Source: Bugula neritina (lineage: Eukaryota > Animalia > Bryozoa). From it: a stretch of DNA of 64,000 bases. Both the position numbers and the translations under genes were made by a program. The notes beneath the pieces were generated by a model. It ran no database searches, had not been told where the DNA came from, and saw nothing but the letters and a program-made list of their open reading frames with translations. Shown piece after piece: positions 47 to 62,420 of this stretch (position 1 is its first letter; each line of letters opens with the position of its first letter). The stretch spans positions 3,639,929-3,703,928 of the forward strand of contig OZ037769.1 of assembly GCA_964035545.1 (NCBI GenBank), read 5' to 3'.

Positions 47-3000
47 CTTCCACTTAGACTTGGCGGTCGAGAAACAATCATTAAGGCTCCTGATGGGCTA
101 GATGTATACTATGCACCTGCAACTGAAACAAAGTGGGACAGTGAGTGTTTATACTGAAATAATAGAGATACAATCTTTACTGGCCAATCTCTTCATCCAG
201 CTATATTATATCTTGTTTGGCCAGTCAGCAAATCGTCAGATTGACTTTTTTTAATGGCATGACAAGCGTGCATATCAAGAATGTCATGAGTTTGTGATGT
301 CATAGAATAATGTGTGTCACTACCGGTTGCATGGCTGAGAAAGTGTGTTTAAAGCTTCAGCAAGAGTACTAAATGTAAGCAAATGTGTCAAATAGGTCTC
401 AGGTGATGTGATAATTTGAGCCAGATAGGTGTCCATGTTTTACCAATATACTTCACAGAATTTTTCTTGAAGTATTGTATTAGGAATTGCTTTATGTTGC
501 TTTGTAGATATGGGGACTTATGTTGGCTGTTTTTACAACTCTCCGAAGTTGTTTAGCGAGCCTCCAGTAACCTTAGTAGAATCATCTGTATACTCATGTC
601 TATCGAATTGTTCTTTTAGTGGTAGGTATATAGTATAAGCTAGTATATACAACTGTAAATAAACTACTATATATAATTACAATGAAATATTTTGCTTAAA
701 TTAATTCAAGTGACATGTTTTGAGTGTCTAAGTTTCTGTATACGCAGTAGCTAGTTATTATAGGCAGTAAAACAAAATGAATTTTATGGTGAACGTTATG
801 GTAGAGTATAAAATGATTAAGTATGAGTTTGAAGGTTTTTTTGTGGCTTGTAAATTATATCAACAGCTTGGTTTTTACTATACAATTGGTGTGGCTTGTT
901 TCTTTTAATGCTTTAATACAATTTGCTCTTCTATTTATAATTTCTTATTTAATGTCTTGAAATATAGCATTTCTGTAATGAACTTACTTTGAACTGAAGC
1001 AATTAAGTTTCAACAGTTAAATATTACTAAAAATGAATATCTTTTCAAAATTTTACCAAGTGCGTGCTTTTAAAGTACGGTATATATTGTAATATTTCCA
1101 TTAAATGCAACGTTGAAACAAATTCTAGAATTAAAAAACCATGTAAAAAAGATTAATTGAGTACACATTTATTATGCAATGTGAAGTTTATATGGTATTG
1201 AAACTTGAATTTCTAAATTTAAAAAATTGCATCTCATCAAATAATGAAGCTCAACATAATTACTAAAAAGCAAGCCCAGTGTGAAAAATATAAAAAAAAT
1301 GTAATACAGGCCTATAATATAACTGGTTAAAATGAATTAATTATTACTTTCCATAAGAATTTAATAATTAATGTATAGTATAACATGTATTTGATATAAG
1401 TAAATTCTGACATCTGTTTTTCTCCTAGGCTATAGCTATGCTGGACTAGAGGACTCAAACAAATGTTATTGCGGGGACTCTTACAACTATCAGGCGGTGA
1501 AGTTGGAGAATTACGAGTGTGACTCTTATTGTTCTGATAAGTCATATGGATGTGGGGGAGATAACAATCAAATCACTATATACAACACAAATTATCTAGG
1601 TCAGGCAAAGAACTATGCTATTTATATAAATGTCACCCAAAAGCACGTTATATCTTATTATGATGTTTTTTTTATTTTCAGTAAAATATTACAAACCTAC
1701 AAACACAACTGCTATATTTTTAAATGTTTTTTACATGAATTTTAATAGTTGAAAATTTTCACACCAAAACACTCAATACTACTGACTCTAGATGATGAAT
1801 TCATTAGTTTGAAGTCATAAATTTTGCGCAGAAAATAAAATAACTGACTAGTTTTGCATATATAATCTTTGCAGGTGTGCTAGCTATAACTTTCTTTGCT
1901 TTAATAAGCTTTTTCCTCTACCTAAAAAGTTTTACGTTGAACATTTTTACAGAACAAAAATAACATAATTACTGTGCAGTGATTACGTGCAATGTCTGCA
2001 ACAATTATAAAAACTATTTGCAAAAAATGTTTTATTTCTCTTTGCAATATATTGACTATGATTGCATAATTACCAGAACAGGGTTATACCTATATTTTGC
2101 TTTATAGTTTGCTTTGATAAATTATGAAATTATATGAACCAACTGTTGATTTACCGCATGCTTGATAATTATAGGCTGCTACAGTGGAAGTCTGGCACAT
2201 AAAATGGACATAGGAGATAAAGTTAAGCCGGAAAAATGTCTGTTGGCGTGTCAGAAAAAAGGTGTGATAAAAGTTATATGCATAAACATATATTTTGTCA
2301 ATTTTAGGTTTGAAATTTTAGAGTAATAAGTTTATAAGACTATAGAAGGGTGGCATAAGCTAATGTTACTAATGATACTAATTTTTCAAATCAATAAGAA
2401 TTTTTTTACTTTCTTATATCAGTTGAACACAATAGTACAAGTATATAGTACTTCTTGATAGTAAAAAAAATGTTTTATCAAAAAGTATTCATTGAAGAAA
2501 ATGTCTATTATTTATGTATTATTGTTTTTTTTGTCCTACAAAATTATGTGAAAATTCGAAAAAACTATTCTGGATAATTCATAATTATATTAACTATTAT
2601 TTCATGTTTAGCAATCAATACAACAGTTATATAGGTAAACATAAGTATATCAATATAAACAATATTGTGCAAAAATAAAAATGGCATCTGAGTGGGAAGA
2701 AACCTATATTAACAGAGCTTGCTGCTAATTAGAGTCTAGTTGACTTAAAGTGCAGCAACTAACTTGAGCAGCTTTAACCTAATTTTTCCAACATATAAAA
2801 AATAAAAAGTCATTTGTGTAGACTTTTCTAGTCATATAAAAATAATTGTCTTTAATTGTACTGAAAAATGTAGGAGATGCATACATAATGATCAGACTAA
2901 TTTTATTTGTTGCAGGATATGATTATGTTGGCCTAACAGATGGTGGAAAATGTTTCTGTGATTATTCCCTCTATCGGAATTCACAAATAAATGATAACTC

Positions 3001-3079
3001 CTGCAACTACACATGTATAGCTAGCCCCAGCAGCATTTGTGGTTCAAAGACAGCATCAGTTGTTTATAAAATACAATGA
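47..3079 (+). CDS. Gene A1 (5'-partial): linker + 2 WSC domains of a CD225-WSC fusion protein; upstream exons lie before the window
   Basis: Exons 47-140 (LPLRLGGRE...KWD, phase 0 to 1), 508-621 (MGTYVGCFYN...SCLSNCSFSG), 1429-1599 (YSYAGLEDSNKCYCGD...CGGDNNQITIYNTNYLG), 2175-2261 (CYSGS...CLLACQKKG), 2916-3079 (YDYVGLTDGGKCFCD...ICGSKTASVVYKIQ*). All GT-AG and in frame. WSC signature YxGC..C..C..YAG..CxC..C..C..CG..VY. AATAAA near 3216. Confidence 0.88.
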
Positions 3080-5953: not shown

Positions 5954-8900
5954 ATGTCTGAAAAGAATCAGTACAACACCGACCTTCCCCCCTCTTATGA
6001 GGTCAGTTCTGGATTCTCCCAGAATGCTTATGCCACACCAGGCTCCGTACAAGCTGGTTATGCCACACCAGGCTCTGTACAGGCTGGTTATACTTTGGTT
6101 GGATATTCCTCCTCCTCTGATCATGTGACCACTCCGCCCACTTCCTTTCCGGCATGTTCTCCGAGGGTAGGGATGACTCATCAGCCAGGAGGGCCCTTGC
6201 CAGAGGTGAGCTAATATATGATATACATTGCATGCTGCTGTTGACCAGGAAACAGCTGCGGTATACGGGTTAGAGTTTTAGCGTAGTGAACATGAAGTCA
6301 TGGGTTTGATCCCCAGTAATTGCCATTAGTGATGTTAGAAAGAGCGTCCAGTTATAATTGCTCCTATGCCACATATGAATAAGTCCTTAGCTTGCTATAA
6401 AAATAACCTTTTTCATCAAGGGTTCTTCAGGAGATAGTGACTATAAACTCATGACCTTGACCAGCTAGACTCATTTTTTACTACAGACAACATGCAAATA
6501 AAACAATGGATATTAAACATTATTCATTTTTTGTAGTTTTTATTTTGTGGAACTAATACTTTTAGATACAATCTTCTGCAAAGCTCAGCATCTTTTATTA
6601 ATTTCAGAATAAGTACCATGCAGCTTTGAAAAACATATTACATCAGTTTAATATTGTACATATTGAAAATCTAAAGCTATATACAATAAGATACATCTAT
6701 AATTACATTTGATATAATAATTATATGGTATAGTAGGAGGCTAAAGCCACTGGAACAGAGTTGGTGATATGCCATATGAACATGGAATAAAAATTATTAG
6801 TTATAAATAATAAAACTCTCAATATGGATAAAATGTTATAGAGAATATATATTAGTAAAATCTTTATATTGTAGAAGTATGCAAGTTTTAGTAAAAATCC
6901 TTTTAATCAAAACAATTGTTAAAGGTAATTATAAGAAATAGACTGCAGTTTGCCGTGACTTTGATAATCAATAAAATGCTAGCGCAGTTAACTATAGCAG
7001 TTTACTAAAAATATGAAGATAAAGGAATACAGGTTTGTGCTATGTAAACAGTTGAAGCAGATAAAACTAAGCCAGTGTTTGCACTCTGGTTGAAATGAAT
7101 AATAAGCACTGCTAAATTATTTATCAAGATAATTATTATGCTGTTGACATATAAAATGCTCAATATGCTCTTTATTGAAAACTTAAAACTTTTTCTTTTT
7201 CTATTTTAAGGCATATCAGAAAATGGCTCAGTGCTGGTTTATTACTGCCATTGTTACCTGCGTATTCTTCTTTCCTCTTGGAATTCCGGCAGCAATATTC
7301 TGTCACAAAGCAAAGAAAGCAGCAGAAAGAGGAGACAACTTTGAATATCTCAAGTACCTAAAGATTGGTAGAGGTCTGGCGGGAGCTGGTATTGGTTTAT
7401 CCATAGCTGTTATAATAAACTTATCAGTTCAAGTGAGTGTCAATAAATTAGATTTAATATGAGTGTATGTTTATTAAATGGCTGAAGCTATCTCTCTCTA
7501 TCGCCATATATGCAACTCTTTATGTATACAAAAATACAGGCTCAAGCCTGCACGCGCACGCACATGTATATATGAATATTTTAATATGCAGCTTCCACTT
7601 AGACTTGGCGGTCGAGAAACAATCATTAAGGCTCCTGATGGGCTAGATGTATACTATGCACCTGCAACTGAAACAAAGTGGAACAGTGAGTGTTTATACT
7701 GACATTATAGAGACAAGGTATTTACTGATGGAGGATTAACATCTAGTTATCTGTATATCTTGTTTGACCAGTCAGCAAATCGTCAGATTGGCTTATTATT
7801 AATGGCATGACAGTGTGCTTATCAAGAATGTTATGATTCTGTGATGTCATAGAATAATGTGTGTCACTACCAGTTGCATAGGTGAGAAAATGTGTTTAAA
7901 GCTTCAGCAGGAGTACCAAATGTAAGCAAATGTGTCAGATAGGTATCAGGTGATGTGATAATGAGCCAGATATTATAGGTGTCCATGTTTTACCAATATA
8001 CTTCACAGAATATTTCTTGAAGTAATGTATTAGAAATTGCTTTATGTTGCTTTGTAGATATGGGGACTTATGTTGGCTGTTTTTACAACTCTCCCAAACT
8101 ATTTAGCAAGCCCCCAGTAACCTTAATAGAATCATCTGTATATTCATGTCTCTCGAATTGTTCTTTTAGTGGTAGGTATATGATATAAGATAGTATATAC
8201 AACTGTAACTAAACTACTATATATATAATTGCAATGAAATATTTTTCCTTAAATTAATTCAAGTGATGCGTTTTGAGTTTCTAAATTTCTGTATATGCAG
8301 TAGCTAGCTATTATAGGCAGTAAAACAAAATGAATTTTATGGTGAACGCTATGGTAGAGTATAAAATGATTAACTATGAGTTTGAAGGTCTTTTTGTGGC
8401 TTGTAAATTATATCAACAGCTTGGTTAATACTATACAATTGGTGTGGCTTGTTTCTTTTAATGCTTTAATACAATTTGCTCTTCTATTTAATTTCTTATT
8501 TAATGTCTTGAAATATAGCATTTCTGTAATGAACTTACATTGAATTGAAGCAATTAAGTTTCAACAGTTAAATATTACTAAAAGTGAATATTTTTTCAAA
8601 ATTTTACCAAGTGTGTGCTTTTAAAGTACGGTTATATATATTGTAATATTTCCATTAAATGCAACATTGAAACAAATTCTAGGATTCAAAAACCATGTAA
8701 AAAAGATTAATTGAGTACACATTTATTATGCAATGTGAAGTTTATATGGTATTGAAACTTGAATTTCTAAATTTAAAAAATTGCATCTCACCAAATAATA
8801 AAGCTCAACATAATTACTAAAAAGCAAGCCCAGTGTGAAAAATATAAAAATAATATAATATAGGCCTATAATATAACTGGCTAAAATAAATTACTTTCCA

Positions 8901-10657
8901 TAAGAATTTAATGTATAACATAACATGTATTTGATATATGTAAATTTTTGACATCTGTTTTTCTTCTAGGCTATAGCTATGCTGAACTAGAGGACTCAAA
9001 TAAATGTTATTGCGGTGACTCTTACAACTATCAGGCAGTAAAGTTGGAGAATTACGAGTGTGACTCTTATTGTTCTGATAAGTCATATGGATGTGGGGGA
9101 GATAACAATCAAATCACTGTTTACAACACAAATTATTTAGGTCAGACACAAAACTATGCTATCTGTATAAATGTCATCCAAAAGCACATTATATTTTATT
9201 ATGCTGCTTTTGTAGTTTTAGTAAACTACAAACCTACAAACACAACTGCTATATTTTTAAATGTTTTTTACATGAATTTTAATAGTTGAAAACTTTTCAC
9301 ACCAAAACACTCAAAGCTACTGACTCTAGATGATGAATTCATCAGTTTGAAGTCATAAATTTTGTGCAGACAATAAAATAACTGAGTAGTTTTGCATGTA
9401 TAATTTTTGCAGGTGTGCTAGCTATAACTTTCTTTGCTTTAATAAGCTTTTTCCTCTACCTAAAAAGTTTTACGTTGAACATTTTTACAGAACAAAAGTA
9501 ACATAATTGCTGTGCGGTGATTACGTGCAATGTCTGTAGCAATCAAAAACTATATTTACAAAAAATATTATATTTCTTTTTGCAATATATTGACCATGAT
9601 TGCATAATCACCAGAACAGGGTTACACCTATATAGGTGTATTTTGCTTTATATTATATATATTTTATATTTTGCTTTATAATTTGCTTTGATAAATTATG
9701 AAATTATATGAACCAACTGTTGATTTAGGGCATGCTTGATAATTATAGGCTGCTACAGTGGAAGTCTGGCACATAAAATGGACATAGGAGATAAAGTCAA
9801 GCCTGAAACTTGTCTGTTGGCATGTCAGAAAAAAGGTATGATAAAATTTATATGCATAAACATATATTATTTTGTCAATTTTAGATTTGAAATTTTAGAG
9901 TAATAAGTTTATAAGACTATAGAAAGGTGGCATGAGCCAATGTTATGCTTAATAATACTAATTTTTTCCGAATCAACAAGAATTTATTTTCTTTTTTATA
10001 TCAGTTGAACACAATAGTACAAGTATATAGTACTTCTTGTTGGTAGAAAATAATATTTAATCAAAAAGTATTCATTGAAGAAAATGTCTATTATTTATGT
10101 ATTATTGTTTTTTTGTACTACAAAATTATGTGAAAATTGGAACACTATTTTGGATAATTCATATATTAACTATTATTTCATGTTTAGCAATCAATACAAC
10201 AGTTATATAGGTAAACATAAGTATATCACTATAAACAATATTGTGCAAAAATAAAAATGGCATCTGAGTGGGAAGAAACCTACTAATTAACAGAGCTTGC
10301 TGCTAATTAGAGTCTAGTTGACTTAAAGTGCAACAACTAACTTGAGCAGCTTTAACCTAATTTTTCCAACATATAAAAAATAAAAAGTCATTTGTGTAGA
10401 CTTTTCTAGTCATATAAAGATAATTGTCTTTAATTGTACTGAAAAATGTAGGAGATGCATACATAATGATCAGACTAATTTTATTTGTTGCAGGATATGA
10501 CTATGTTGGCCTAATAGATGGTGGAAAATGTTTCTGTGATTATTCTCTCTATCGGAATTCACAAACAAATGATAACTCCTGCAACTACACATGTATAGCT
10601 AGCCCCGGCAGCATTTGTGGTTCAAAGACAGCATCAGTTGTTTATAAAATACAATGA
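5954..10657 (+). CDS. Gene A2: Pro-rich tail + CD225/dispanin + linker + 2 WSC, about 367 aa
   Basis: Exons 5954-6205, 7211-7432 (CD225: WFITAIVTCVFFFPLGIPAAIFCHKAKKAAERGD...TM2), 7592-7685, 8058-8171, 8970-9140, 9749-9835, 10494-10657. Total 1104 nt, one open frame, intron phases 0,0,1,1,1,1. Probable non-coding first exon ends at the GTAAGT donor at 5472. Confidence 0.88.
6249..6456 (+). mobile_element. tRNA-derived SINE, family 1
   Basis: Homologous to the copies at 15623 and 26672. Degenerate A/B boxes. Flanked by a TTGACCAG direct repeat (6241-6248, 6457-6464). Confidence 0.78.
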
Positions 10658-13473: not shown

Positions 13474-16400
13474 ATGTCTGAAAAGAATCAGTACAACACC
13501 GACCTTCCCCCTTCTTATGAGGTCAGTTCTGGATTCTCCCAGAATGCTTATGCCACACCAGGCTCTGTACAAGCTGGTTATGTCCCGCCAGGCTCTGTAC
13601 AAGCTGGTTATGCTTCAGTTGGATATTCCTCCGCCTCTGGTCATGTGACTACTCCGCCCACTTCATTTCCGGCATGTTCTCCGAGGGTAGGGATGACTCA
13701 TCTGCCAGGAGGGCTCTTGCCAGAGGTGAGCTAATATGGTATACATTTTATGCTAATCTTAATTTTGCATTATGTGATGCATTAATACATGATAAACAAA
13801 GATTATGTTTAGAGCATAATTTTAGTAATAAGGTGTTTTGAAAACTTGATTTTGTAAAGATAGCCTTTTGCCATTTTAAAAGTATGTATTGCTTTGAAAA
13901 CCTTCCTAGCTGCAATAGTTCACGGAAGTTTTACAAACTCTTGAAGCATACAGTAAACTTGGTGCTAGATTTATACTCTATCAATTAATATACTTGACAC
14001 ATTGAAAGTAGGATATATAAAGAAACAACACCCTCAATGTGTGAGCAACATTTTGATATGAGCAAAACTTTTGTAAAAAAGACGTATTTGTAACAAACTG
14101 GTTTTATAGCATTATAAATATTTTTTGATAATTTGACAGCTGCATTGCTGCATTATTATATGGCATTTAGGTGTAAAATGCATGCTTATTATCTTTATTA
14201 CATTGTTTCACAAAGATACTATAAATGGTGGTACATTGTGTCCGTGCAAGTCTGTTCTGATAAGGCCAGATTATATAATAGTAATATTATATCAATTACC
14301 ATAAATAATATATCAATTAATGAAAGCAAAAGTGCGAAGCATTTGAGTAATTTATAATAATATGTTGACTACTATAAATTACACTAGCTGCTAAGTATTT
14401 TGCTACTCATATCATACTATTTCAACCAAATTGAAGTATGACCTATTTCAAAGACTATATACGAAGGAAATTTTGAACTGAGTATAATTAAATTTTGTTT
14501 TAAATTATACATTCAATTACTCTTCTAGCCAACTAAATAGTATTGTTTACTTATAGCTGCTATATAGCTAACTAAGTTGCTGGCTAATTTATAGTTGCTA
14601 GATACTATTATAGTTAGTAGTTACTAGTTACTATAAGTTACTATAGTTACTAGTAACTAATTACTAGTAGCTAGTAATTATAATAACTAGTTACTATAGT
14701 TACTAGTTACTAGTTACTATAGTTACTATAGTTACTGACCAGTTGCAAACTAATGGTGTTTTGTTCTGAAAAGAAATGACTGTTTTACACACTTAAAAAT
14801 ATGACAAGCATATAAGCAGTTATAGAATATAAACTGTAGTTTGCCATAGTATTGATAGTTATCAGTTTACTAAAACGCATGATAAAGGAAAACAGGTTCG
14901 TGCTATGTAAACAATTGAAGCAGATAAAACTAAGCCAATGTTTGCACTCTGGTTGAAATATGTATAATAGGCACTGCTATTATTCAGCAAAACAAGTGCT
15001 TTGAATCTATGCCTTCTATATTTTTAATTTATAGCATTCGTGGGAAATTTGAATAAATCAGCTCAGAATATTTTTTATATGTTTAGTTATAGTTTACAGC
15101 AAAATAATATGCTGTTGATATACGTATATATGTATAAAGTGGTCAGTGCATTGACAGATTGAAACTAATTTTCAATTTTATAATTTTCAAACTGGGTAAT
15201 ATATTAGATGTCTTTGTTAACAATTTAAAAGGAAATAAAACTAACAAAAAACAAAACCTGCCACATAAAGAACTGAAATAACGCAACAAAATTGATGTTT
15301 TTTTATTAATGCAGGACTTTTATCGTTGTGAATTTATTTTTTGTTTAAAGGCATATCAGAAGATGGACCAGTGCTGGTTTATTACTGCCCTTATTACCTG
15401 CGTATTTTTTTTCCCCCTTGGAATTCCAGCAGCAATATTCTGTCACAAAGCAAAGAAAGCAGCAGAAAGAGGAGACAACTTTGAATATCTCAAGTACCTA
15501 AAGATTGGTAGAGGTCTGGCAGGGGCTGGTATTGGTTTATCCATAGCTGTTATAATAAACTTATCAGTTCAAGTGAGTGTCAATAATTTAAATTTAATAC
15601 TAGAACATTTAGTGTAGATAAAAAAAACTCATGCGAGTTTATAGTCACTCTCCCTGTGAGAAACCCCTGATAGAAAGGGTTTTTGTTAAAGCGGGCTAAG
15701 GACTTATTTAAATGAGGCACAGAAGCAATTATAACTGGATGCTCTTCCTAACATCACCGATGACCTTGGTCTGATCTCAAACCCATGACTTGGAGTTTAC
15801 TAAGCCAGCGTTCTAACCCCTAGACCACGGCTGCTCCCTATATTATAGTGTAGATAAAGAGGGACTAAATAGTTTTAAAAAATAATTAGCATATATACAG
15901 TTAAATAATGAATAAATAAAACAATTTTAGATGCTAAATTGTGTTAAATTGAGAAACATAATTTACACTATATACTATCTACAGAATGCTTTTTTATTAG
16001 TTATAAAACACTGCTTATTATTTGTTTTGGATATATTTTAATAGCTTATAAATTGAGTCAACAACTTCGCATGTACAAAATTGCCAAAATCTCAAAAAAA
16101 GAAAAAAATTAGTAAAATAAGAAATAAAATGAATATAGCTAGCCCATTAGTAAAATTAAATACCTTCTCTATTTTTGACATATGGCATTATATTCAACAA
16201 ACTTCTACCAAAATCTTAGGTCAACTAGCTTACTTTAGATGTTGATCAGCTAATCAGAATTCTTTTAAGAAGTAATAAGTTCCAATATTTGCTAGAGTCG
16301 TTAGTAAATTATTAACGTATTTTGATATGCAGCTCCCACTTAGACTTGGAGGTAGAGATGTTAACATTGACGGTGCTGACGGGATATATCGATACTCTAC

Positions 16401-19327
16401 ATCTGCGCCTCAAAAAAGGTGGAAAAGTGAGTATTTATACTAATATTAGAGACAAACTGGTTACTGATTAAAATTCAGCATTTGGTTAGATATGTGTTTT
16501 ATCAATTTCATAGTTGAACAAGTCATCAAGCTGGCTCATAAAAAACACCTCGTTTTATAGGTATGGGAACTTACATCGGCTGTTATCCCAATCCCCCGGA
16601 GCTGTTTAGCAAACCTCCAGCCGCCTTAGTAGAATCATCTGTATATTCATGTCTATCATACTGCTCCTTTGGTGGTAAGTATGAGAGCTTATAGTATATT
16701 GTTACTGCAAATGAACTACTATAATTACAACGAAATAGTTGGCTCAAACATTATGTGATATGGATTTTGGTTTTCAAGTGTTTTCATATTCATAGTAACT
16801 AGTATATAGCTGTTAAAGCACGAAAAGTATTAAGAACTCTAAGATCTTTAATAGTTGACTTCATGTTTTAAAATTGTTTGCCTATAAAAAGACCAGTTTT
16901 TATTAATTTTTCACCATTTGTATTGAAAATATGGCTTCTCATTGTTTTATTCTGCTTTATTAATTCAACCTCTTCCATGTATTTCTTCTGTTGCCACATT
17001 ACACAACTTTATAAGACAATCATCATAGGCATTGTGTATAATTGAACATATATTGATACATAGTTTTTGAATAACCAAATATTCGCTTTGCCTTGTAAAG
17101 TAGATTATATAATATTACTTGAGTCAGCTGTATAAGCAACAAAATAGTTTCAATATGCCCAGACATGCACAGACTAAAACAAATTGAAATAAATCTTAGG
17201 TTATTTAAAGTTCAGGATAAAACAACTCAAACTTTTGTATTTTAAAATGTTCAGTGCAAAAATTTAATGAAAACAAGAATAGAATTATTTAAATAGCTGT
17301 GGTTTAAAAATTTAACTGCAATGAAACATTATACTACATGTAGAACTCATTGCAGAAGTAGTGTGTTATTACAGTATCACTCTCTGCATGTGACAATTGT
17401 GTATATACAGCTATGTTACATATATTTAAGGTTACACTTACGCTGGAATAGAGGACTCAAACAAATGCTCATGTGGGGACACATATGGCTACGGAAATTT
17501 ATGGCTCGAGAATTATGAATGTGACTCATACTGCTCTGATGAGTCATATGGATGTGGGGGAGATAACAACCAAACATCTATTTACAGCACAAAGTATCTC
17601 GGTCAGAAAAACTATCTTTGCTCCAAAAATGCTGCCCACAAACATTTAAACATCATCCTCTATTTATCTTCGTTTATTAAAATTTTAAAGCTATAACACA
17701 ACCTCTAAAAGTGCCTTATTAAATGAATATAGTTTTAATATTAAGTTTTATTATAAGCTAAAATAATTAAATAAAAGAATGTTAATTTAACAAGACTATA
17801 TATAGTAACATAAAATTATTGTATAGCTGTAAGTGAGTGAAGAACAAATATATAGGCTGCAGTAAATCAAAAATATATTTACAGTTTAATAGCTGTTAGA
17901 CTGTCATTTGCAAATGTTGAAGTGTCTTGAATTACCAAGATAATAGTTGGGTATACATACTATACTTTGTAGGCATGCAGACTAAATGTTGTACTTGCTT
18001 TTTAATTTAGCAACTAAGATATTTGTTCAATCTCCTACATTAAAAGCAAAAATAAATAAATTTATTACTTTTGTGTGCAATAACTAGTATAACAAAAACT
18101 TGCAAAGATAGGGAACTTTTTGAAACTTCTGCAATGATAGAAAAACCAGTTTTACCTAAAAGAATTAAATGAGAGAATGTAATTAAGCAAGACTATATAT
18201 AATAGCATAAAATTATTGTAGCTGTAAATGAGTGAATAATAAACATATTATAGGCTGTAATTCATAAATTTATTTACAGTTTAATAGCTATTATATAACA
18301 CTTATATTATTTTCAAATGCTTAAGTGCTGTGAATAAACAAAACAATTATAATTATATTTCGTAAGTATGCAGAATAGACCTTAATTTAGCAACTGAAAC
18401 TTTAGTTTAATCCTCTGCATTAAAATGTTAAAGAATATGTAATTTATCACTTCTAATATGTGATAATTAGTATATATATTTAAAACTTGCAACAAATAAT
18501 TATTTTTTTTGTAATCTCTATATTACGATGATAAAAAACTTATAGCAATCACTTTTACCTTGTATAATTTAAAAACTTAGTAATTGTAGTTAGTAATTGC
18601 TTACAGACATGAGCTTATAACAATATTAACCAATAACAACTTTAAGAATTGCAGTTAACTGTATGCATATTTAATTATCTAGGCTGCTACAATGGAAGTC
18701 TGGCGTATGAAATGGATCACATGGGAGATGCAGTAAAACCAGAAACATGTTTTTCAGTGTGTCAAAGAAAAGGTATGAAAACATACAATTTTTGTTGTTT
18801 TGGTGTAATTAAGCTTTAGATTTTGGTCTAAAAATATACTAATTATATAGAGTGAGCTATTATATAGTGTGGTGTTTAATAATACTGAGAATTGACAAAA
18901 CTTCTGTATGCATCTCATTATACCATGAAAATTAATAATGACGACTGTCACTAACTAATAATATCGCTAATTACTTCAAAGTGTAGCAACTAACTAAAAT
19001 ATTTGAGCAATCCTTATTGAATTCTGTCAACTTCATAAAAGTAGAAAGCTAATTATAATACAAATTGTATCAATTTAACAGTAAAGCCTATTCATATGAC
19101 TTTGCATTAGTAAGATATTATGTGTTATATACAACAGTCATGCTGAATTATTTATTGCAGGGTTTGACTTTGCTGGATTGATAGATGGGGGAAAATGCTT
19201 CTGTGATCTTTACTATATTCTTGCGAGTAGAAAACTGCATGATGACCTCTGTGACTTCAAATGTAAAGCCGACCCAGACAGTATTTGTGGTTCAAAAACG
19301 GCATCGGTTGTTTTTCCAATACGTTAA
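13474..19327 (+). CDS. Gene A3: Pro-rich tail + CD225 + linker + 2 WSC, about 369 aa (alternative upstream ATG at 13417)
   Basis: Exons 13474-13725, 15351-15572, 16333-16426, 16561-16674, 17431-17601, 18683-18772, 19161-19327. Total 1110 nt, open frame, same phases as A2 and same or +3 nt exon sizes. Non-coding exon donor at 12998. Confidence 0.88.
14610..14737. repeat. AGTTACT/AGTTACTAT simple repeat
   Basis: Direct observation in the A3 intron. Confidence 0.85.
15623..15845 (-). mobile_element. tRNA-derived SINE, family 1
   Basis: Minus-strand head gggagcagccgtggtctaggggttagaacgctggcttagtaaac...gggtttgag. TSD TAGTGTAGATAAA at 15610-15622 and 15846-15858. Confidence 0.85.
17790..18495 (+). 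repeat. Intronic tandem duplication, period about 400 bp, in gene A3
   Basis: caagactatatata..taaaattattgta..gctgtaa.tgagtgaa occurs at 17791 and 18188, with colinear similarity downstream. Confidence 0.75.
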
Positions 19328-28117: not shown

Positions 28118-28630
<513 letters not shown>

Positions 28631-46876: not shown

Positions 46877-46878
<2 letters not shown>

Positions 46879-47335: not shown

Positions 47336-50300
47336 ATGAATGAAAATGCAGACCCCCTGCTACCCAACTACCCGCCACAACCAGGTGCACCTGGACAACC
47401 ATCTCAAGTAGTCTACCAGCAAACCCCTCAAGGTCAACCTCAGGTCATGTATGTGATGGCCCCACAAGCTCAACCTCTTTCTCAGGTATTCTAATATAAC
47501 AAAATCAATATAATTCTTTAAAATTATTTAGCACCTAAAAGCCTGCAATTTTAAAACTGCTTTCCATGCATATAACATGTTAATCAAACGAAGAAAATAG
47601 CTGAGAATGTAAACTATATTATAATGATATATTGTTCTTACACTGTTGTATTGAATATTCCTATACATGCTTGTAGATGACATATATAGCACTAGTCACA
47701 GGGCATGTAATTGTGTCTCAAAAAGTAGACAATTACCGGTATCATATGGAATACTTTAGAATACTTTTAGCCTAAATGTTTAATAACTTATTAGATAATC
47801 ACCACAGTGGTAATACACATGCAGCATACGCATGCAGCTATTGTGTCACAGAATTCTTAATTAACTTATGGTGTTTATATTGTTTACGAGGAAGAATTTC
47901 CTTGTAGAGTGAACAGTCATCCTCAACTTGCTGGTTCATTACTGCCCTAATATCCGCCATATGCTGCTGCCTGCCCCTAGGAGTAGCTGGTGCCATCGCT
48001 GCCTCTGCTTCTAGGGAGGAGGCTATGCGGGGGAATGCACTTGCTCATCAACAGAAGCTCAAACAAGCTAAAGTTTTGACTGTCCTATCTTTTCTTGTAG
48101 GAGCTGGTCTTATTATTGGACTACTAATGTGGGTAAGATTTTACACTATCAGAGTGTTGTTGAATACTACTACACTGGCTGTGTCTGCTCTGTATTAGAT
48201 TGCGATGTGTTTCAATGTACGATCCAAAAGATACAACACTTTTAAATCCCAAAACCCTAAACATATGTCTAAAAATTTAACTACTCTGAAAAATGTAATA
48301 ATATGCAAAATTGTTACTAAAAGCTTAAAGTAGGTTGAAGTAGTAGTAGACAACACCATGTCTGAATCTCTGTTGAAATTCTGACGGAAAACTGTTTTAA
48401 CTTCTTTTCTCCTGATTACAGGCGTTGCCATTCTTCTATACACCAGGTTCAATTAAATATTACGATGAAGATCCAAACGATGTTGGAAAATGGTCAGGTA
48501 AACAGCTATAACATGTCTATAATAGCTTGTTTAAATCAAACCAATATTTCTTAAGTTGTAAAGCTGCGTTTATACTTGTGTTTTCATATAATGGGTGCCA
48601 TCTTGTCATATAATAGGTGCCATCTTGTATCATAGTGTGCATGTTTTAGATAGAGGAGTATACATAGGATGCTATAACAACCATTCTCCGGATCCAGACC
48701 TCAACAGCTCTTCTGTATATTGGACTGACAACAATGTGGACAAGTGTGTTAAATATTGTGCTGAAAAAAGTTAGTTTTAAATCACTTGTCACTTGTAAAT
48801 TCTTAGCACTAATTTGAGATGTGCTTATAAACTTGTTTATATTAGTAACAGTTAAGTTTGTGTAGAAATTAGTACTACTGTAGTCTATATACTGAGCTAA
48901 CGAACTTACATGCTGAGTTGATGCAGTTGTATGGGAAAGGGTGACCTGTTCATAAAACTGTTCATTGCCTACTAGTCATGTTTCGTTAAAAAAACTATAA
49001 CAGCATTACAATGCATTTGATTAGAAAAAAATAGATTATGTTCAGTTTACAGTAAATTAGGTTGGTGATTAGTGTGAATCTTCCCTGGTGTTTATTTTAT
49101 TATTTAAACTTGGCTTATATACTGGGTTTACAACCTACACTTCTACACCATCAAGATTACTAATTTTGTTAACCAACTTAATTTTTTTATTATATGATAC
49201 ATATATCTATGCCAACTGGTTGTACTTGAGAGCTATAAGGAATTTGCTGTAGGCACAGCTTGTTTTCAAAGGTTAAAGAAATAGCGCAAAGTAAAAGCTT
49301 GGCACTTGTAATGAGTCATGCTAGATGAAAATTGATTGGCTACATCATATATTGTTCAAAATCTATTCCATTTTAAACTTATTAGTGTTATTTCATGTTT
49401 GCCACAGGAACAAAATACGCAGGATTGTCTAATGGCTACTGTTATTGTGGCAATTCCTACGGCAGGTATGGAAAAGCCGATGCGGATGACTTTTGTTCTG
49501 ATCCATGTCCTGTCCCTCACGAGGATGAGATGTGTGGAGCATCTTACCTTGTCTCTTTGTATAGGACTAATTATCTAGGTCAGTATGCTATAACTGAACA
49601 GTGTTTTATGTGCAAATCTGTACTACTAAAAGTAGTAAATTTTACTTGTTTAATGAAATATATTCCAAGAGGCTAATTAGTAAAATTATCAAAATGATCA
49701 AATTTTCACTCAACAACCAACCAGCAACAGCTGGAACAATACTTTTTGAATAATTTATATATTTGAGAAGTAGTGCTTGCATATATAATAATTATTTTGA
49801 TAAAGTAAATTAACAAACTTTGAGGTGGTATATGATGACTTTTTTCTATCTCTAAGCATTATGATAACATATTGTGCCAGTCAATATACTACCTCATTGT
49901 TTTTTCATAATTTTATGATGTAACAGCGTGATGTGACTTACTTTAATGTGTCACACTATGCCATTGTCATATGATCTGGGTTGATGTGTCACAGGGTGTT
50001 ATGTGAAAGATAATAGTTCACTGGAAGGTAACCCAATAGAATATGTGACAGCTGAAGAATGTACAGAAGCATGTGGCTATGCAGGTTAGTGCATGTTTCT
50101 ATATTCCAAGTAAGTTATGAAAATTTGATGGGAAGACAAATCTAGTTGTACCAAGTATAAAGTTTTTAGAAGATGTCTTTTTAAATATTGTAGGAATACT
50201 GACACTTAAATAAGATGTTTTGTGGCAGCCTGACAATAATGTGCATGCAATAAATGTTTTCGTTTTAACTTTTCTGGTAACTCATCTCTATGAAATTATT

Positions 50301-53300
50301 TTTAGCATTATTTATGTTTTAACAATGAAATATATTATAGTATAACATTGAGTAGGGATTTGGGTTTTGTAATTTTACTTTTTTGAAGATGGCTCATTTA
50401 GTGCCTCTTTTCAATGTCCAACAGAGCAATTTCGTTATTCAAATAAAATGTTAATGTTTTCATTGCAGAATTTAATATAATGATGTAATGTAACATCATG
50501 GGTTTATAATATATATTGCAGACTACGATTTTGTTGGCGTAGCGCTAAATCAGGGTTGTAATTGTGACAATGACTTCAACAGATTTACTGAAACTAGTAA
50601 CGAAAATTGCGCTGCTGCGTGTCCCAGCAACAGTAGTCTGATTTGTGGAATTCCTGGTGTGAAGGCAGTATATAAGACATGGGTGTTTACCAGAGGTAAG
50701 GGTCTGTTACTATGCTAATTTTAATACAATAATTACTTATCACATTTGATAATATATTTAATTTCTATGATGTACATTTTTCTGGAATTTGCAAAAATTT
50801 TTGTATCTTGTGTCGATTGCAAAAATTTACACTAAAGGAGTTGAACTCATTTTTTTTATCTTTACATAATTTAAACTCTTTTTCTACAAAATTTATCAAT
50901 TTTTCTAGCTAAATATTTCTTTAAATTTAATCTGTCATACCTTACAAAGTTTAATAAAATGTTTACTTGTAATGTTTGATATTATGTTGAAATTTTCAAT
51001 GATCTGAAATTACTCATTACAAATTTCTAAGTGTATAGTCTCATTGAGACTGAAATGTAAAATACAATAAAATAACTGAGGTTTACAAAATGTTAATTAT
51101 ACTTTTTACTTTATATTTCGATTTTGATGATATATAAATGTTTACCATGTATGAGTTAGATTTCATTTTTAAGATCTTTCTCACGAAGTTTGTTTTGTTC
51201 AAAATTTTTTTTTACAAAATATAAGGAATAACATTTAAAATCTAACTTAACTTAACATACCTCAGCATATAAGTCATAATGTTAATTTCCATCAAAATGT
51301 TTTATTTTATACAGACATCGTATTTGGATACTCCCGCGGCTGTTATCTAGAGAACGCATCAGACCCTGACATGGACGATACTCCAGTTACTCTCAATCCG
51401 GACACTGCTTTGGAAGATTGTACAGAAAGTTGTGTCAACAGAGGTTCGCATCTTTGCAATTGACCCTTTGCATTGTGTTGGAAAAGTAAAATATCATTTT
51501 ATTAATAATATAGAAATTATCCTAAATAATTTTATATATAAATTATTTGGACCATAATATACAACATCATAGTTGCAACTACTATTGTGGTTATTTGATA
51601 AATATATTCCAATAACTTGAGCAATGTGCAAAAACTTCCGTTTTATTGCCGTTGCATGCTTTACAAAAAAATTAAGTTTTCAACTCAAAATTATATTGAG
51701 AAAAAGTATCTTCTAACAGTTTCAAAACCATCTAATTTTAAACAAGCAGCCGGTGTTATCATGCAACTAAATATTTGTACAGTTATTTTGTTAGCTTTCA
51801 AGAAATTATGACTTCAAAAAAAATATATATCTATTATACACAACAGGTTGTAAAATTTGGTATTTAGTCTCTATTATGGCAATAAAATGCTGTACAGAAC
51901 AGCACCACCCTTCAAGATGTTTACTGGTTTAGAAAAAGTTTTTAATACAAAGTTAATATACTCGTACATGAACATACAACACAAAAGCATGTCTATAGTT
52001 GAAACGGCCTGAGGCACCAAACAATATGGGTGTCTGTTAGTCAGTCAGTTATTTATCTCTTTGAACATTCATTCTCTGCATTGCATAGTTTTGCTATGTC
52101 ACTACTTATAGGATTCAAATATGCTGGAGTACAAGAGACTAGTTGTTTCTGTTCTCAAACTTATGGCAAGCACGGTGAAACCTCGGAGTTTGATTGCAAT
52201 CTATGTGAAGACGGCTCATACATGAGATGTGGCGCTCAGGAGAAAAACTCTGTGTACCGCACGACTTTTCTAGGTAAGAGTAGAATAGAGGAAAGCAATT
52301 TATTCTGTGTAGTGATGAGTTTAGCCAGTGGTCCCTGTGGTGTAATGGTTAGCACCCTTGCTTGCATACCAGAGGTCTCAGGTTCGATTCCCAGTGGGAG
52401 CAATTATTTTTCATTCTGCACTCCAATAAAAAAAAATTATTTACTTCTGAAATTGTGGCGAACTTTCAAATGACAAGTTAAACAAATTCATGCAAATACC
52501 AGTGTTAAAAAATAGCATTTCTGTTGATATGAATTAATTATACTGTCTCAGATTGAAACCAAAATTTTAAGCCCATGTTATGTTTTTGAACTATAGGTCT
52601 TGCAAAGTTCTACCATTTTTTTCCATGTTTAATATATTTCATTGCTAAATCATTGAAATTAGAAAAGTATTTTTAAGACTAGAAAAATTATGGCAATTTT
52701 TAACTTCTACAGTTATTTTAGTTCTCTGGTAAACAATGTTTCAATCATTATAGCTGCTTTTAACATAAATGATGCCAAAAATCTCGTGAGAACATATGCT
52801 GATTATACAGTATATCCAAAGGATTGCTGCTCAAGTGCGCTTCTTTCTAGTAGATATCAATTTTCAGTATAAGATCTTTAAAAAAAACATTGGGACAGTA
52901 AATTTAACTATTTTTTTAGTTTTATTATTTGAAATGACCTACTCAAGGTTTTGAATGATATAAAATTTACATAATATATTGTATTGGTAATTCTAAAACT
53001 ACAACGAAATACTTTGTGTTTCTTTAAACTATATGGATTAGAATGAACTTTTGGCTAATAAATAGTAGAAAAAGAGGTAAAAATTAGTTTGTTTCCTGTG
53101 GGCATAATTTGCTTTTGTTTCAAAAATATGTGATAGATTAAATATTTTTCCAAACTTGTAAAAAACTTGTTTGACTCCAAAAATGTCCCATACTTTCATG
53201 CTGAATCTGAATAAAATTGTTTGGAAACCTTATTATTTAAGATTGTAATTTACAAGCTTAAAAATATAAATGTGAAATTATTTTTTATTATATTTTTCAA

Positions 53301-54403
53301 TAAACTTTTTAAATGTAAATGTTTGTGTTTTGCAGGCTGTTACATAGAAGATATGTTTGTAAAGACATTTGATCACTTTGCTCATTTACCTAGTTATGAT
53401 ATCACTCCAACTGAATGCATATCGAAATGCAGAAAAGATGGTGAGTTAATTAACTTAATTCTACATACTTATTTCGTAATAAGGAGACAAGATAGCCTGG
53501 TTTAAATATATTTAGAAGTTATCAATTCACCATGTCAACCTATTTGACCTGTAGAATTTTAATCCTAAAACACAATAACTTTTAATTTCAGAAGATTTTT
53601 CAAAATTTTAAAAGTGATGCTCAATTTTTTTGTTGCTGCCGCTGCTGGGTCTAGCAATGTATTTGGTCGAAATTTATAAGTAGCATATGTAAATCATATT
53701 TGCTACACGTTTTATATAGTGTTGCAATACATATAATAAAGCAAGCTCAACATTATACTGTGTGAAATAGCAGATGGCATACTCATATTTCTTTTAAAAG
53801 GCAAATCATTCGCTCAAGGTTGCACATTTTATCTAATATATAGTATTGATTATAGTATAATATGAACTATACTAAAATATAACTTTAACTAGAGTATCAT
53901 ATGAACTACAGTAGATTATAACATATAGAAAAGTATAACATAATATTTACTAGAGTATAATATAATATTAATTAGATTTTAATAGCAACTATAAAGTATA
54001 ATATGGTATGTAGCAGAGTATATAATTCATGATATTTACTAGAATATAATATCTAAAAAACAATCCGAATTTTCCTTCATTATTCAGTGTATGGAAAACT
54101 GAAAATTAGTAAGGAAAGCTTATTTTTCAAGCCTTATAAATTTTATAGAGATGGTATATTAAAATTATATTTTCTATAAGTACATAAACGTTTTAAGACA
54201 CTTTTATAAATATTTTAGGATTTCTTTTTGCTGGAATTCGAAATGGACAAGATTGTTACTGTGGAAATGAATTCAACAGATACGGTGAAGCCCCTGTGGA
54301 TGAATGCAATCTCCCTTGTTCTGGCAACCCTCAGGTTACTTGTGGTGGAATCCTTCGTAATTCTGTTTATAATACTCAGTTTGACTCTCAAAGATACAAT
54401 TAA
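47336..54403 (+). CDS. Gene A4: Pro/Gln-rich tail + CD225 + linker + 4 WSC, about 528 aa
   Basis: accATG at 47336. Exons 47336-47485, 47908-48132 (CD225: WFITALISAICCCLPLGVAGAIAASASREEAMRGN...), 48422-48497, 48650-48769, 49408-49578, 49995-50084, 50522-50695, 51315-51443, 52112-52273, 53336-53440, 54219-54403. Total 1587 nt, open frame, all GT-AG. Confidence 0.88.
52308..52413 (+). mobile_element. Single unit of the tRNA-containing repeat (tRNA-Gln-like, solo-LTR-like) in an A4 intron
   Basis: TG...CA unit containing ggtccctgtggtgtaatggttagcac...ggttcgattcc (A and B boxes). TTCTG on both sides (52303-52307, 52414-52418). The anticodon stem does not pair. Confidence 0.7.
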
Positions 54404-57386: not shown

Positions 57387-57456
57387 GTGCCAATGATTCT
57401 TAAAACCTGATCTACTGAAGTGAATATAAAAATATAAATTAGGGCTCAACTGAATA

Positions 57457-58765
57457 GGGGTAACGGGGGCACAACGGGCCGAATTTCGCATTTTTTGCTC
57501 TCATTCGTCTGTTTTTCAAGTTACTAGTTCAATAATCTGTAGTCTTAATGCTGCATCTGTTGTCTATTACAGGTATCAGTTTGCTGTTTCTATCTCTCTC
57601 ATAATTTTCAGAATAATGAAATTTTCATGAGGAAAAAATCGGCCCATTGTGCCCCGGTACCGGGGTACAATGGGCCACTGGGTGGGACACAACAAATATA
57701 TTGAAACTTGGCAGATTTTGTTGCATCTGATCTTTATTTATTTAATATTACAAATAAATAAACATATTCTTTCAGATTTAAAGCAAAATTCATGTTTTAA
57801 CTGTACAGTTTGTGCCACCAGGGGGAGGCAAAATCAAACGCACATCACTCGGTTCTACGGTGCCATTATCATTACTGTTTGAAACTAAAAATGTTTTTTA
57901 TTTACACTTTAGAAAAACTTTTATCAGAAAAAAAAACTTTAGTAACATGTGCTACAAAATTTTAAGTGGACTTTTTTCTATGAACTGCAGTTAAGGTGCA
58001 TGGCTTCGATTTGTGGCTGGAGTACGGAAGGGAGGGGGGGGGGAGCGAATAAGCAAATCACAATTTATTTTAGTCAAATACATGTATATTCCCTCAATGA
58101 TATAATGTATAATGAATATTATGACTATCTACTAGTAGCAACAGCAGAGTGTTTTGTATTATGTATAAAATAGCATAGCTTTAACCTCGCCAGATGTATA
58201 TATTAGGGGAGCTTCACCTTGTAGTTTTGTACTCTTACCATGATGTCTTTGATATTTTACAAAAAGGTCAGAAATGGCTCTATCTATAGATTTTAGTAAC
58301 ATTTCAACCAACTTTTTGGGCAAACAACCCAATAACAGTGATCAGAGTACAATAATCAGGTGGCCCATTGTGCCCCGGTCAGCGTGGCCCATTGTGCCCC
58401 GGATGGCCAAATTGAACAAAAATGTGCCTCATGGAAAATTTATTTTAGAGTTTGCTGTTATACTAGTTAAGCAATGTAGAGACAAGCAATGGCAACAATA
58501 TCAGTAAAATCTAGGCTTGTTGCCTTTGAGTGTAAAAAGTTATAAAGCCTTAACGACATCTTAAAAAATTTACAAAAAGTAGGTAAAAACAGTTTTTCAC
58601 TCGCCTTTTCAACATGTATGTTCCGCAAATGTTGAAACTACAGTGGCTGAATATTTATGTCAATACCTTTTTATGAAAAAAAAATTCACAACTCTAAGTC
58701 AATAAGTTCTCTCACAATTTGGCCGGCTTTTTGTACCCCTATGACCGTTGTGCCCCCGTTACCCC
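57457..58765. mobile_element. Non-autonomous DNA transposon (MITE), TA target site, in the probable first intron of A5
   Basis: TA|GGGGTAACGGGGGCACAACGG ... CCGTTGTGCCCCCGTTACCCC|TA, a perfect 21-bp TIR. Internal ggcccattgtgccccgg repeats at 57641, 58362, 58386 and an inverted copy at 57660. Confidence 0.92.
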
Positions 58766-58933
58766 TATATCTGAAATGAAAACTCAGACTAGCAAACTTA
58801 AACTTAAACCATGCAGCTAAAAATAAATAAACTGTGACTGTACTATATAATACTCAGGTTGCTATGTAGTTTATTTTTATATGCACCTTCAGCTTAACAT
58901 TGGTCAATATTTACACATCTGCTGCAGGTCACA

Positions 58934-61900
58934 ATGGCTGAACCGGAAATGAATGAATATGAATATGTTAGTACTGAAGATCAAAAGACTGGTACTTACC
59001 AGGGTTTATCAGCACCTCGGCCAATTGAAGCTCAGCCTGTGGGGAAAATAAACCCTCAACCTGGTCAACAAGGTGAACATCACTATGAGCAGCTGCCTAC
59101 AGGGAACCAGCAGCAGTTTTTACCTCAACAAGGATATGCCCCTGCACCTGGAAATGCCTCTTATACACAACCTCCACCTGGATATGCCCCTCAAACACAG
59201 CCACCACCTGGAAATGCCTCTCATACTCAACCTCCACCTGGATATGTTCAACAAGGATATTCTGCACAACCACTTGCTTATGGATATGTCACTGGTCAGC
59301 AGGTGATTGTACAGGCACCACCGCCTCTGCCAGTCGTAAGTTTATTTATATTATCCAGTGAATGCATACTTACTCAATTTTTTCTTCTTAATTTGCCGCT
59401 TTTATTTTTATATGATAAAATTCTTTGAGCTATCCAAATACAAATAATATAATCATCTACAAATAGCTGAAGAATATACTAATCATTATGAAATATGAAT
59501 AGGAGTATAATAACTACTATAAAACTTAATACTAAAACACCAATATAATATGAATGCCTTGTACAGAATATGAAACATGTTTGATGCATAAAAGTTGTAA
59601 GCATTTCAACAGGTCATTCTATACAGTTTTATTTGGAAGTTAAAATGACATCCATGTTTGATGAAGTATAATATGATGCTAGAGCTTTAAGTATAAAATT
59701 TTTAGATTTAGTTCAGAGTCAGGTTTAAATAAATTATAAATTAGACAAAGTGCCTATCTGTAGGTAACAGAAACAAGTTCAATATGCTGGATGGTTTTTG
59801 GAATTCTGACGGCCATATGCTGCTGCCTGCCACTGGGAATTGCTGGTGCTGTCCTGGCATATTTATCTGGTGAAGATGCTAGAAGAGGAAATGCTGCTGC
59901 CTACAAGACAAAGATCTGTCAGTCTAAAGCTCTCACACTCACAGGACTAGGAATTGGGTTGCTGATCGTTATAACTGTAGTATGTGCGGTAGGTGGCTGT
60001 TCATGTTGCATTATACAACCGTTGATCCCAAATGTATATATTATTAAACATGAAGACATTTTAACATATGCTATTATAGAATGTTGAACATTTGTTTAAT
60101 TCCTGTGTTACTTATAATTTACCATAATAACTACTTTTAATCTGAAAACCCGATAATATATCTTCATAACCTTCTTAGAATCTATATAGGTTTAATATAA
60201 ATTGAGATTTTTGATTTATAGAAAGAAGAAAACTCCATTTAGTATAGGTAAAAAACAAAGTCATGCTATTTTAAAAACTGTACTTTAGTGCATTTTTTGC
60301 AATATATTTTATTATTGATCTTTTCAGATTTGCCATATTTATAATCTCCTAAATAGTTTTGTGTTCTGTCAGAGATATTCTCATCATTTTTCTATTTGAA
60401 CACATCTCGAAATTGCCCAATTTCCTATAAACTCGGTTCTATCTCCGCTCTGTTCTGTTCGGGTAGCGGGTGGCTACTAGAGGCCTAGCTCAATTAGGCA
60501 TCTCCACCTAACCCTGTCTTAAGTATCCTCTTCATTGAGGGAACATGACTAGAGATCTTTTCTGATTGTATCCCACCATCGATGCTTTGGGCGGTCACAT
60601 GCAGTTTCTCTTTTCGTTAACTGTCATCTTATGCAATCTTCTGATATCATCTTCTTTCTTTCTTCTAATAATATGCAAGTCACCATTTACAGCTGATTTA
60701 CTCTGTAAGTTTGTATGCTTATTATGTTTTATGTCTATGCTATTGATTCATTATTAATTGATTATCTCCATATATCATGATATTAATTCTCTAGTTTACG
60801 ATGATTATGTTTGTCAACCACTGCCTAGTAATATTTTAGAGTAACATGTGTAACTGGCATTATTGTTCAATCTTTCTTGGATTCAATATTAAATTCCTAT
60901 TCTAGGGACAACTCAGAAAAAATAGGTTGTCCTTATTTGAAGGAGAAGATAATTTCCTTACACCAGCTAAAATTGTAATGCTTGAGTTTTAGATGACAAT
61001 ATGGTGCATCGACTGTTATAAATAGTAAAATATTGTAGTATCTGGTACCAATATATTCTATTGGTCAAAGCTATAGTGTCTATTCTGGAAACTCTGTTTA
61101 TCCAACTTCTGGAAACTGGGGTTATCGGACTTCAACTCATGGATATCCAGGCACTCTGCCTGGTAAGTGCATAAATGACTAATACTTTTAGGTTTTGTAA
61201 GTTGTTCATAATATGAGTGTAAAAATATCCGCTAAAATATATGTTTGTATATTACTATTAGTAAATGTTTGTTTAACATAATTTTCAAATTTGGCTTGCA
61301 AACTGCGTTAATTATACATAAATTCATTTATATTATTATAAAATCTTTTTTGTTGAATAAAGTTGGGAAATAATATTGTCATGTACGCTATAAAAATTGT
61401 TGTTATAGCTTATTTAAATTACATATATATTCAATAATTTTATAATACAGTCAGCATTAGCATAAACATAGTTTCAATTTAGATTAAAGCAAAGATTTTA
61501 ATTACAACGTTAAACGAAACAATAGGCCCCCTACCAGTTTTTAACTGTTATTTTTACTTTGAGCAGTTGGTGTGAGTTATCTCGGATGCTTTGATGACAG
61601 TGCAGTTTCTCGAGATCTTGATGGCGATGACTACGATTTTGGAGCTGGTCTTTCTGTAGAGAAGTGTACAGACTACTGCTCTGCAAGAGGTGGGTGTAAC
61701 TTTAGTTTATAGCTTTACTTCCAACTTATCTGTTATAGTGCAAACTTGCATACATTATATTAACATTCACATTATATATGTATATTAAAGCAGCAGGTGT
61801 GACACAAACTGTAATATATTAAAACACAATGTGTCTGCTACACCTTTATGATGACAACTTCAGGTGCTCTACCCTGAAAACAATTTTCGTCTCAAACACT

Positions 61901-62420
61901 AAATAAATAGAGTGACAGAGAGAAACCCTTTGCCTTTAACATAACTAGCACAGCACCAATTGATGATTTAGGCAATTATTTCAAATATGATACTTCTTAT
62001 ACTTGGCAGTAAAAAAGGAGTGTAAATTTCAGTGGATTTTAAGCCAGTTACAATTCAGAAGTTTAAATTTTGCTTAGTAATATATTAGTGATGAAATAAC
62101 ATGGGCTTCTTGTATAGGTGAATGGTGAGTAAAAGCTAGCCTTAGTATTAATTGCTGAGCAAACTTTAGATTACAGTCACATGTTATGCTTCAAGAAAAA
62201 ATTCATTATAATATATTTTAAAAATTTACTTATAATGTTTTTTTTCAAAGATTACTTATACGCCGGTCTACAAGATGGATATCGCTGTTATTGTGGGAAA
62301 TCCTATGGTTCATACGGAGAGGTGAATCAGTACAGGTGCAGTTCTGTCTGCTCTGCTGATGGCATGGAATGTGGTGGATTTTACGCCAACTCTGTTTACA
62401 GAACTAACTATTATGGCTAA
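58934..62420 (+). CDS. Gene A5: long Pro/Gln/Tyr tail + CD225 + linker + 1 WSC, about 347 aa
   Basis: Exons 58934-59335, 59764-59988 (CD225: WMVFGILTAICCCLPLGIAGAVLAYLSGEDARRGN...), 61039-61162, 61567-61689 (SYLGCFDDSAVSRDL...VEKCTDYCSAR), 62251-62420 (DYLYAGLQDGYRCYCG...CGGFYANSVYRTNYYG*). Total 1044 nt. Probable non-coding first exon donor at 56086. Confidence 0.84.
60430..60720 (-). mobile_element. RTE-clade LINE 3' fragment in an A5 intron
   Basis: Minus-strand translation DRPKHRWWDTIRKDL*SCSLNEEDT*DRVRWRCLI matches the GRP..RW.D....D......A.DR..WR C-terminus of RTE ORF2. Confidence 0.72.

Follow-up and report, generated by a model that had tools for sequence, protein, structure and literature searches.

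Bugula neritina is a cheilostome bryozoan. In a 64,000-nucleotide (nt) stretch of its genome (contig OZ037769.1, here C5, positions 3,639,929 to 3,703,928; hereafter the window), we found four complete genes, and the 3′ part of a fifth, in which a CD225 membrane segment is followed by extracellular-type WSC domains. As read from the exon structure, CD225 and WSC are very probably encoded as one fused architecture, and this CD225-WSC family, so far confined to B. neritina, is apparently undescribed. We propose, with a rough probability of 0.45, that its products act as surface or endosomal binding and uptake receptors, similar to scavenger or pattern-recognition receptors, for microbial or extracellular glycans or glycoproteins.

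The CD225-WSC join

Genes B (5954-10657, 367 amino acids (aa), two WSC domains), C (13474-19327, 369 aa, two WSC domains), D (47336-54403, 528 aa, four WSC domains) and E (58934-62420, 347 aa, one WSC domain) were complete when rebuilt from their splice sites, i.e., all introns were GT-AG and the joined frames had no internal stop. The exon layout of the A-E type is uniform, with a Pro-rich exon ending in phase 0, a CD225 exon (0/0), a linker exon (0/1) and WSC exons (1/1), and every WSC domain of the window genes is spread across two phase-1 exons. The N-terminal and CD225 exons of gene A lie about 1.9 and 0.6 kb upstream of the window start. The features are as follows:

47-3079, plus strand: gene A, 3′ part (linker 47-140; stop at the end of WSC2)
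508-621 and 1429-1599, plus strand: gene A, WSC1 exons
2175-2261 and 2916-3079 (stop), plus strand: gene A, WSC2 exons
5954-6205, plus strand: gene B exon 1, Pro/Ser/Tyr-rich N-terminus with a PPSY motif, phase-0 donor
7211-7432, plus strand: gene B CD225 exon, phase 0/0, containing both hydrophobic segments
7592-7685, plus strand: gene B linker exon, phase 0/1, 159 nt past the CD225 donor
8058-8171, 8970-9140, 9749-9835 and 10494-10657 (stop), plus strand: gene B, exons of two WSC domains
13474-13725, plus strand: gene C exon 1, N-terminus with PPSY
15351-15572, plus strand: gene C CD225 exon, protein 96% identical to gene B
16333-16426, plus strand: gene C linker exon, phase 0/1
16561-16674, 17431-17601, 18683-18772 and 19161-19327 (stop), plus strand: gene C, exons of two WSC domains
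47336-47485, plus strand: gene D exon 1, Pro/Gln-rich, with LPNY
47908-48132, plus strand: gene D CD225 exon, PF04505, 39.5 bits
48422-48497, plus strand: gene D linker, phase 0/1 (the older assembly has 73 nt here, with the frame preserved)
48650-48769, 49408-49578, 49995-50084 and 50522-50695, plus strand: gene D, exons of WSC 1-2
51315-51443, 52112-52273, 53336-53440 and 54219-54403 (stop), plus strand: gene D, exons of WSC 3-4
58934-59335, plus strand: gene E exon 1, Pro/Gln/Tyr repeats, two PPGY
59764-59988, plus strand: gene E CD225 exon, PF04505, 29.2 bits
61039-61162, plus strand: gene E linker exon, phase 0/1
61567-61689 and 62251-62420 (stop), plus strand: gene E, exons of the single WSC domain

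When Pfam was applied exon by exon, the WSC half-exons matched PF01822, and eight Cys were present in 11/11 WSC domains of the window. The CD225 segments of genes B and C scored 26.2 and 24.9 bits, slightly under the PF04505 gathering cut-off of 27.1 bits, and are clear homologues nonetheless.

The four CD225-linker junctions named in the first-pass annotation of this DNA (7432/7592, 15572/16333, 48132/48422 and 59988/61039) proved exact, each with a phase-0 GT donor and an AG acceptor. The same exon and phase layout, which that annotation had reported as kept across diverged paralogs, also extended beyond the window, the phase-0 donor past the second helix being retained in most of the 22 CD225 exons of the family, though weak in five of these. 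Likewise, the linker had been said to continue the helix, and in the structural model the predicted helix runs through the CD225-linker splice junction. The statement that no signal peptide precedes the WSC exons held for genes B, C and D, where none is able to splice in, but in gene E there is a single weak candidate, located in an intron, at 60599. The join was further analyzed by a chance test on eight paralogs outside the window, none of which was in the training set of the splice model. In 7/8 of them the best-scoring linker exon had Trp as its second-to-last residue, against 0/95 shuffles, and in 5/8 the splice score exceeded all 25 shuffles.

An older assembly, from a diverged individual (synonymous divergence (dS) of ~0.18, introns ~88% identical), retains genes D and E; in gene D the linker differs by one codon between the assemblies, and the CD225-linker intron is 923 nt long in the older one against 289 nt in the window. 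Annotated automatically and independently, that assembly has models of 383, 312 and 368 aa in which CD225 and WSC are joined. The overall ratio of nonsynonymous to synonymous change (dN/dS) was 0.15-0.49, with most values at 0.1-0.4, i.e., purifying selection predominates across the exon classes; values of ~1 or higher were obtained, on few sites, for the CD225 exon of gene E and for several short linkers, and linker values above 1 rest on too few sites. Scans of metagenomes turned up no transcript contigs of the family.

It is very improbable that the main output consists of short, stand-alone CD225 proteins, made by intron read-through and early polyadenylation, with the WSC exons belonging to a minor isoform or to separate genes: read-through would give a tail of 9-25 aa and then a stop, an AATAAA lies at 7442 within the gene B intron, and some database models end there (P0002) or split gene D, but the intron is merely 159 nt in gene B and 289 nt in gene D, the linker has neither start codon nor signal peptide, AATAAA (chance frequency 1.7 per kb) is not kept at that place in C, D and E, the phase-0 donor is conserved across paralogs and in the bryozoan Watersipora subatra, and the WSC1 exon changes frame in the older-assembly copy on which one of the split models is based. 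A short read-through isoform is possible, with the AATAAA present in gene B only.

Family size, ongoing change and origin

The 22 CD225 exons of the family fall at two loci of C5, with 19 at 3.607-3.819 Mb and three at 0.243-0.270 Mb. Complete WSC domains (1 to ~11) follow in 19/22; one of the remaining copies is truncated, one is degenerate and one has no WSC. At the second locus a divergent CD225 exon is followed by ~11-12 WSC domains (C5 229-244 kb, minus strand), and two further CD225-WSC4 genes lie at 260 and 270 kb. The degenerate and truncated copies, of the A/B/C type (L004:1399-3800 and L005:1202-3420), are also found in the older assembly and are probably pseudogenes or short forms.

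Genes A and B are a recent duplicate, with 92-94% DNA identity, and are represented by a single copy in the older assembly. Gene C is a mosaic, in which a B-like upstream region and anchor (93-94% DNA identity) are joined to an older ectodomain (74-85%); dS between B and C is 0.19 in CD225 and 0.87 in WSC. Judged from these sequences, the CD225-WSC array is still changing. Other large WSC exon arrays are present at C3 15.15-15.90 Mb and C4 23.06-23.12 Mb, and at least 146 WSC matches were counted genome-wide, WSC being broadly expanded in B. neritina.

Two types of gene resemble the halves of the fusion. The three-exon, phase-0 scaffold recurs in four CD225 genes of W. subatra, where exon 3 closes with a short Tyr/Trp/Asp-rich tail and a stop; within ~10 kb of these genes, no WSC exon was found. 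A matching cluster of short-tailed CD225 genes is present in Bugula, and in both species a RecQ helicase gene adjoins it. Two intronless contigs encode short-tailed CD225 proteins, which suggests that the three-exon scaffold is spliced. The second type consists of five near-identical WSC-only genes within the main cluster (C5 3.785-3.795 and 3.827 Mb; L013:2321-L014:4482 and L018:3700-4700), in which an exon encoding a 22-residue signal peptide and ending in a phase-1 donor lies ahead of the same WSC exon pair and phase-1 acceptor. These genes are secreted counterparts of the family and possibly the donors of the cassette. Because the Watersipora scaffold ends in a stop, and because in the WSC-only genes this acceptor receives a signal-peptide exon, CD225 probably took over from the signal peptide as the anchor. 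In the simplest history, whose direction we infer from the sequences, CD225 was placed onto WSC by exon shuffling: exon 3 of a short-tailed bryozoan CD225 gene would have gained a phase-1 donor and displaced the exon for the signal peptide in a gene for a secreted WSC protein, with tandem duplication afterwards. The resolution of the tree was too poor to test a single origin of CD225-WSC. Since both precursor gene types survive, one of them in the same cluster, the family is a clear example of how exon shuffling can give rise to a new membrane protein.

The first-pass annotation knew of no functional description of this architecture, and our searches for papers on the CD225 and WSC pair returned nothing. 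The architecture is already present, unnamed and with no description found, in automatic B. neritina models. Homolog searches of limited sensitivity, covering 150 of 406 representative matches and with clustering that can hide fusions, found CD225 together with WSC in B. neritina only, and 0/86 WSC matches from other species carry CD225; atlas feature searches came back empty. A protein of Mytilus galloprovincialis (VDH99158.1, residues 295-611) has a CD225 with a cut second helix and a faint WSC-like stretch (E 0.008), together with a lectin-like stretch and a C-terminal membrane helix; it is probably a chimeric gene model and possibly an independent fusion.

Other features were noted in the window. 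The 19.4-47.3 kb gap holds two related short His/Cys-containing coding-like segments on the minus strand (29524-29604 and 39549-39629, 52% identical) and a direct duplication of ~3 kb (31360-34517 and 35042-38109, 82-86% identical) that contains neither CD225 nor WSC exons. A 510-nt AT microsatellite (28118-28630) yields spurious Ile/Tyr open reading frames, and 41911-42325 is occupied by a minisatellite with a 22-nt unit and a higher-order period of 110 nt. Related inverted sequences, recognized by eye, flank ~1.3 kb upstream of gene E (57449-57680 and 58356-58770) and are possibly a small DNA transposon.

Anchor, ectodomain and proposed function

By profile and anatomy, the anchor of the predicted proteins is CD225, yet without three features listed for the dispanin family, namely an A-x6-A motif, a conserved loop intron and a C-terminus of <10 residues (PMC3282796). 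Two hydrophobic segments flank a Lys/Arg-rich loop, which carries G-D in genes B and C and G-N in D and E; the double Cys of the first helix is present in D and E and absent in B and C. The A-x6-A motif is absent in all four window genes, its first position being Tyr or His, as in Watersipora, and there is no intron in the loop, both helices lying within one exon of 222-225 nt, likewise as in Watersipora, so that these two absences are common to other bryozoan CD225 members. The median tail among 156 CD225 relatives is 10 aa, and those with WSC are exclusively from B. neritina. The CD225 profile found a single solved match, PRRT1 (PDB 9zks, E 2.8e-4), and fold searches with the CD225 model returned generic helical hairpins only.

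The anchor model predicts a pair of short helices, interrupted at the Pro of the Cys cluster, and a single long helix running through the splice junction; the WSC portion of the model is not reliable. Four to six Lys/Arg precede the last transmembrane helix (TM2) and 0-3 follow it, a positive-inside bias, and with a cytosolic loop WSC would be non-cytosolic under either published CD225 topology. The earlier proposal that CD225 is an anchor with WSC outside the cytosol is favored, at the level of sequence and model, by the 8-Cys sets, the charge bias, the signal peptide of the sister genes and the helix across the junction. The sequons (NCS, NYT, NGS, NSS and NAS) that had been offered as a luminal sign are weak evidence; the gene E ectodomain has none, and the two NAS of gene E are N-terminal.

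A predicted model of two WSC domains (predicted local distance difference test 81) matched KREMEN1 (E 1.5e-7, root-mean-square deviation 1.4) and yeast Wsc1. KREMEN orthology was rejected, as the alignment is confined to the WSC stretch, and KAF6029935.1 is wrongly named KREMEN1 in the database. For the lectin-like ectodomain of the first-pass annotation, glycan binding is a lead only, because WSC also binds proteins, KREMEN1 being the closest solved fold; carbohydrate binding is not universal among WSC domains, which also mediate protein contacts (PMC9024836).

We propose that CD225 would serve as an uncleaved anchor, built from a re-entrant helix pair, a cytosolic basic loop and one long transmembrane helix, and would display 1 to ~11 disulfide-bonded WSC domains at the cell surface or in the lumen. 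PPSY, LPNY or PPGY, together with Yxx-hydrophobic motifs, occur in the N-termini. If cytosolic, motifs of the PPxY/LPxY and Yxx-hydrophobic types bind NEDD4-type ligases and endocytic adaptors (AP-2), so that in the Bugula proteins they would recruit such partners. Receptor variety would come from duplication and from the recombination of anchor halves with ectodomain halves. Several points weigh against a binding and uptake receptor. The CD225-WSC proteins have no signalling domain; the aromatic clusters of Wsc1 in yeast may serve protein clustering over glucan binding (PMC9024836); positive selection was sought on the WSC exons and none was found (dN/dS 0.13-0.28), where a fast-evolving immune receptor might show an excess; and the gene models and junctions, read from DNA alone, are predicted.

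It is possible, if rather unlikely, that the same fused proteins have structural or secretory roles, either in cell-cuticle or cell-cell adhesion or as Golgi-resident glycan or cargo adaptors resembling WSCD1/2 and xylosyltransferase, which are WSC proteins of type II. WSC is found in sulfotransferase and xylosyltransferase clusters, CD225 proteins govern Golgi exit (PMC8994042), purifying selection dominates, and up to ~11 tandem WSC domains would fit a rod-like tether. However, the proteins have neither a catalytic domain nor a mucin stalk, and the copy-number shifts between assemblies, the truncated copies and the mosaics would be more typical of recognition families. Returning to receptors, a bolder version, in which ligand binding to a swappable WSC ectodomain controls a CD225 trafficking module in a lineage-specific, recombining Bugula family for non-self recognition (of microbes, the bacterial symbiont or other colonies), appears doubtful; if true, such a ligand-controlled receptor would be the first ligand-sensing CD225 protein.

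More doubtful still is a ligand-gated IFITM-like restriction factor or SNARE regulator, in which WSC would catch a pathogen or symbiont and CD225 would block or redirect membrane fusion. CD225 proteins bind SNAREs via an R-SNARE-like motif (PMC11730294), gene D carries an Arg at the sixth residue ahead of the loop Gly, its older-assembly orthologue has GxxxG as well, and the Cys cluster is kept in D and E, but this Arg is missing in B, C and E, GxxxG is found in 0/4 window genes, the double Cys is missing in B and C and A-x6-A is absent; the sole solved match is PRRT1 and not an IFITM, and invertebrate dispanins resemble the C/D subfamilies (PMC3282796). IFITM orthology was rejected on GxxxG and on the R-SNARE-like central Arg, present in gene D only. 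The IFITM-type effector that had been suggested at first is a weak reading, because PRRT1 is the closest relative of solved structure and most of the expected features (GxxxG, A-x6-A and the loop intron) are lacking.

As candidate recognition receptors, the CD225-WSC proteins would be of interest in a colonial animal that carries symbionts and whose immune genes have received little attention, and glycosylation of their tails would provide a built-in reporter of CD225 topology. The scope is one species complex, for which we infer the function.

Comparison with known systems

With PRRT1 and the CD225 family, the Bugula proteins share a Pro-rich N-terminus, two hydrophobic segments, the first with a Cys cluster and Pro-x-Gly, and a basic loop. 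They differ in what follows, since 138-403 residues come after the CD225 exon in the window genes, and more at the second locus, against <10 aa in the family (PMC3282796). Described CD225 proteins are small and have almost no luminal tail, so that a family with large disulfide-bonded ectodomains extends the range of this fold. The short-tailed bryozoan genes (Watersipora XP_067933731, XP_067934107, XP_067934423 and XP_067934123, and Bugula KAF6026954) have the same scaffold of N-terminal, CD225 and third exons, phase-0 introns and a Tyr-, Trp- and Asp-rich exon 3 that extends the helix, but in them exon 3 ends in a stop, the locus is different and they form a separate tree group (92/84). The unreviewed UniProt models A0A7J7J7V0, A0A7J7KU28 and A0A7J7JVQ3 represent the same genes in the older assembly and place CD225 and WSC on a single chain, but are often truncated or split and are named only WSC domain-containing protein or KREMEN1.

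KREMEN1 and Wsc1 are of type I: they have a signal peptide and are anchored at the C-terminus. The Bugula proteins share with them the WSC fold with four disulfides (PMC9024836) but, unlike KREMEN1, have no kringle, CUB or C-terminal hydrophobic segment, and the WSC stretch alone aligns. WSCD1/2 and the xylosyltransferases are N-anchored: there, too, WSC is C-terminal to an N-terminal membrane anchor, but those proteins are enzymes with a simple signal anchor, whereas the Bugula proteins have no catalytic domain and a CD225 anchor.
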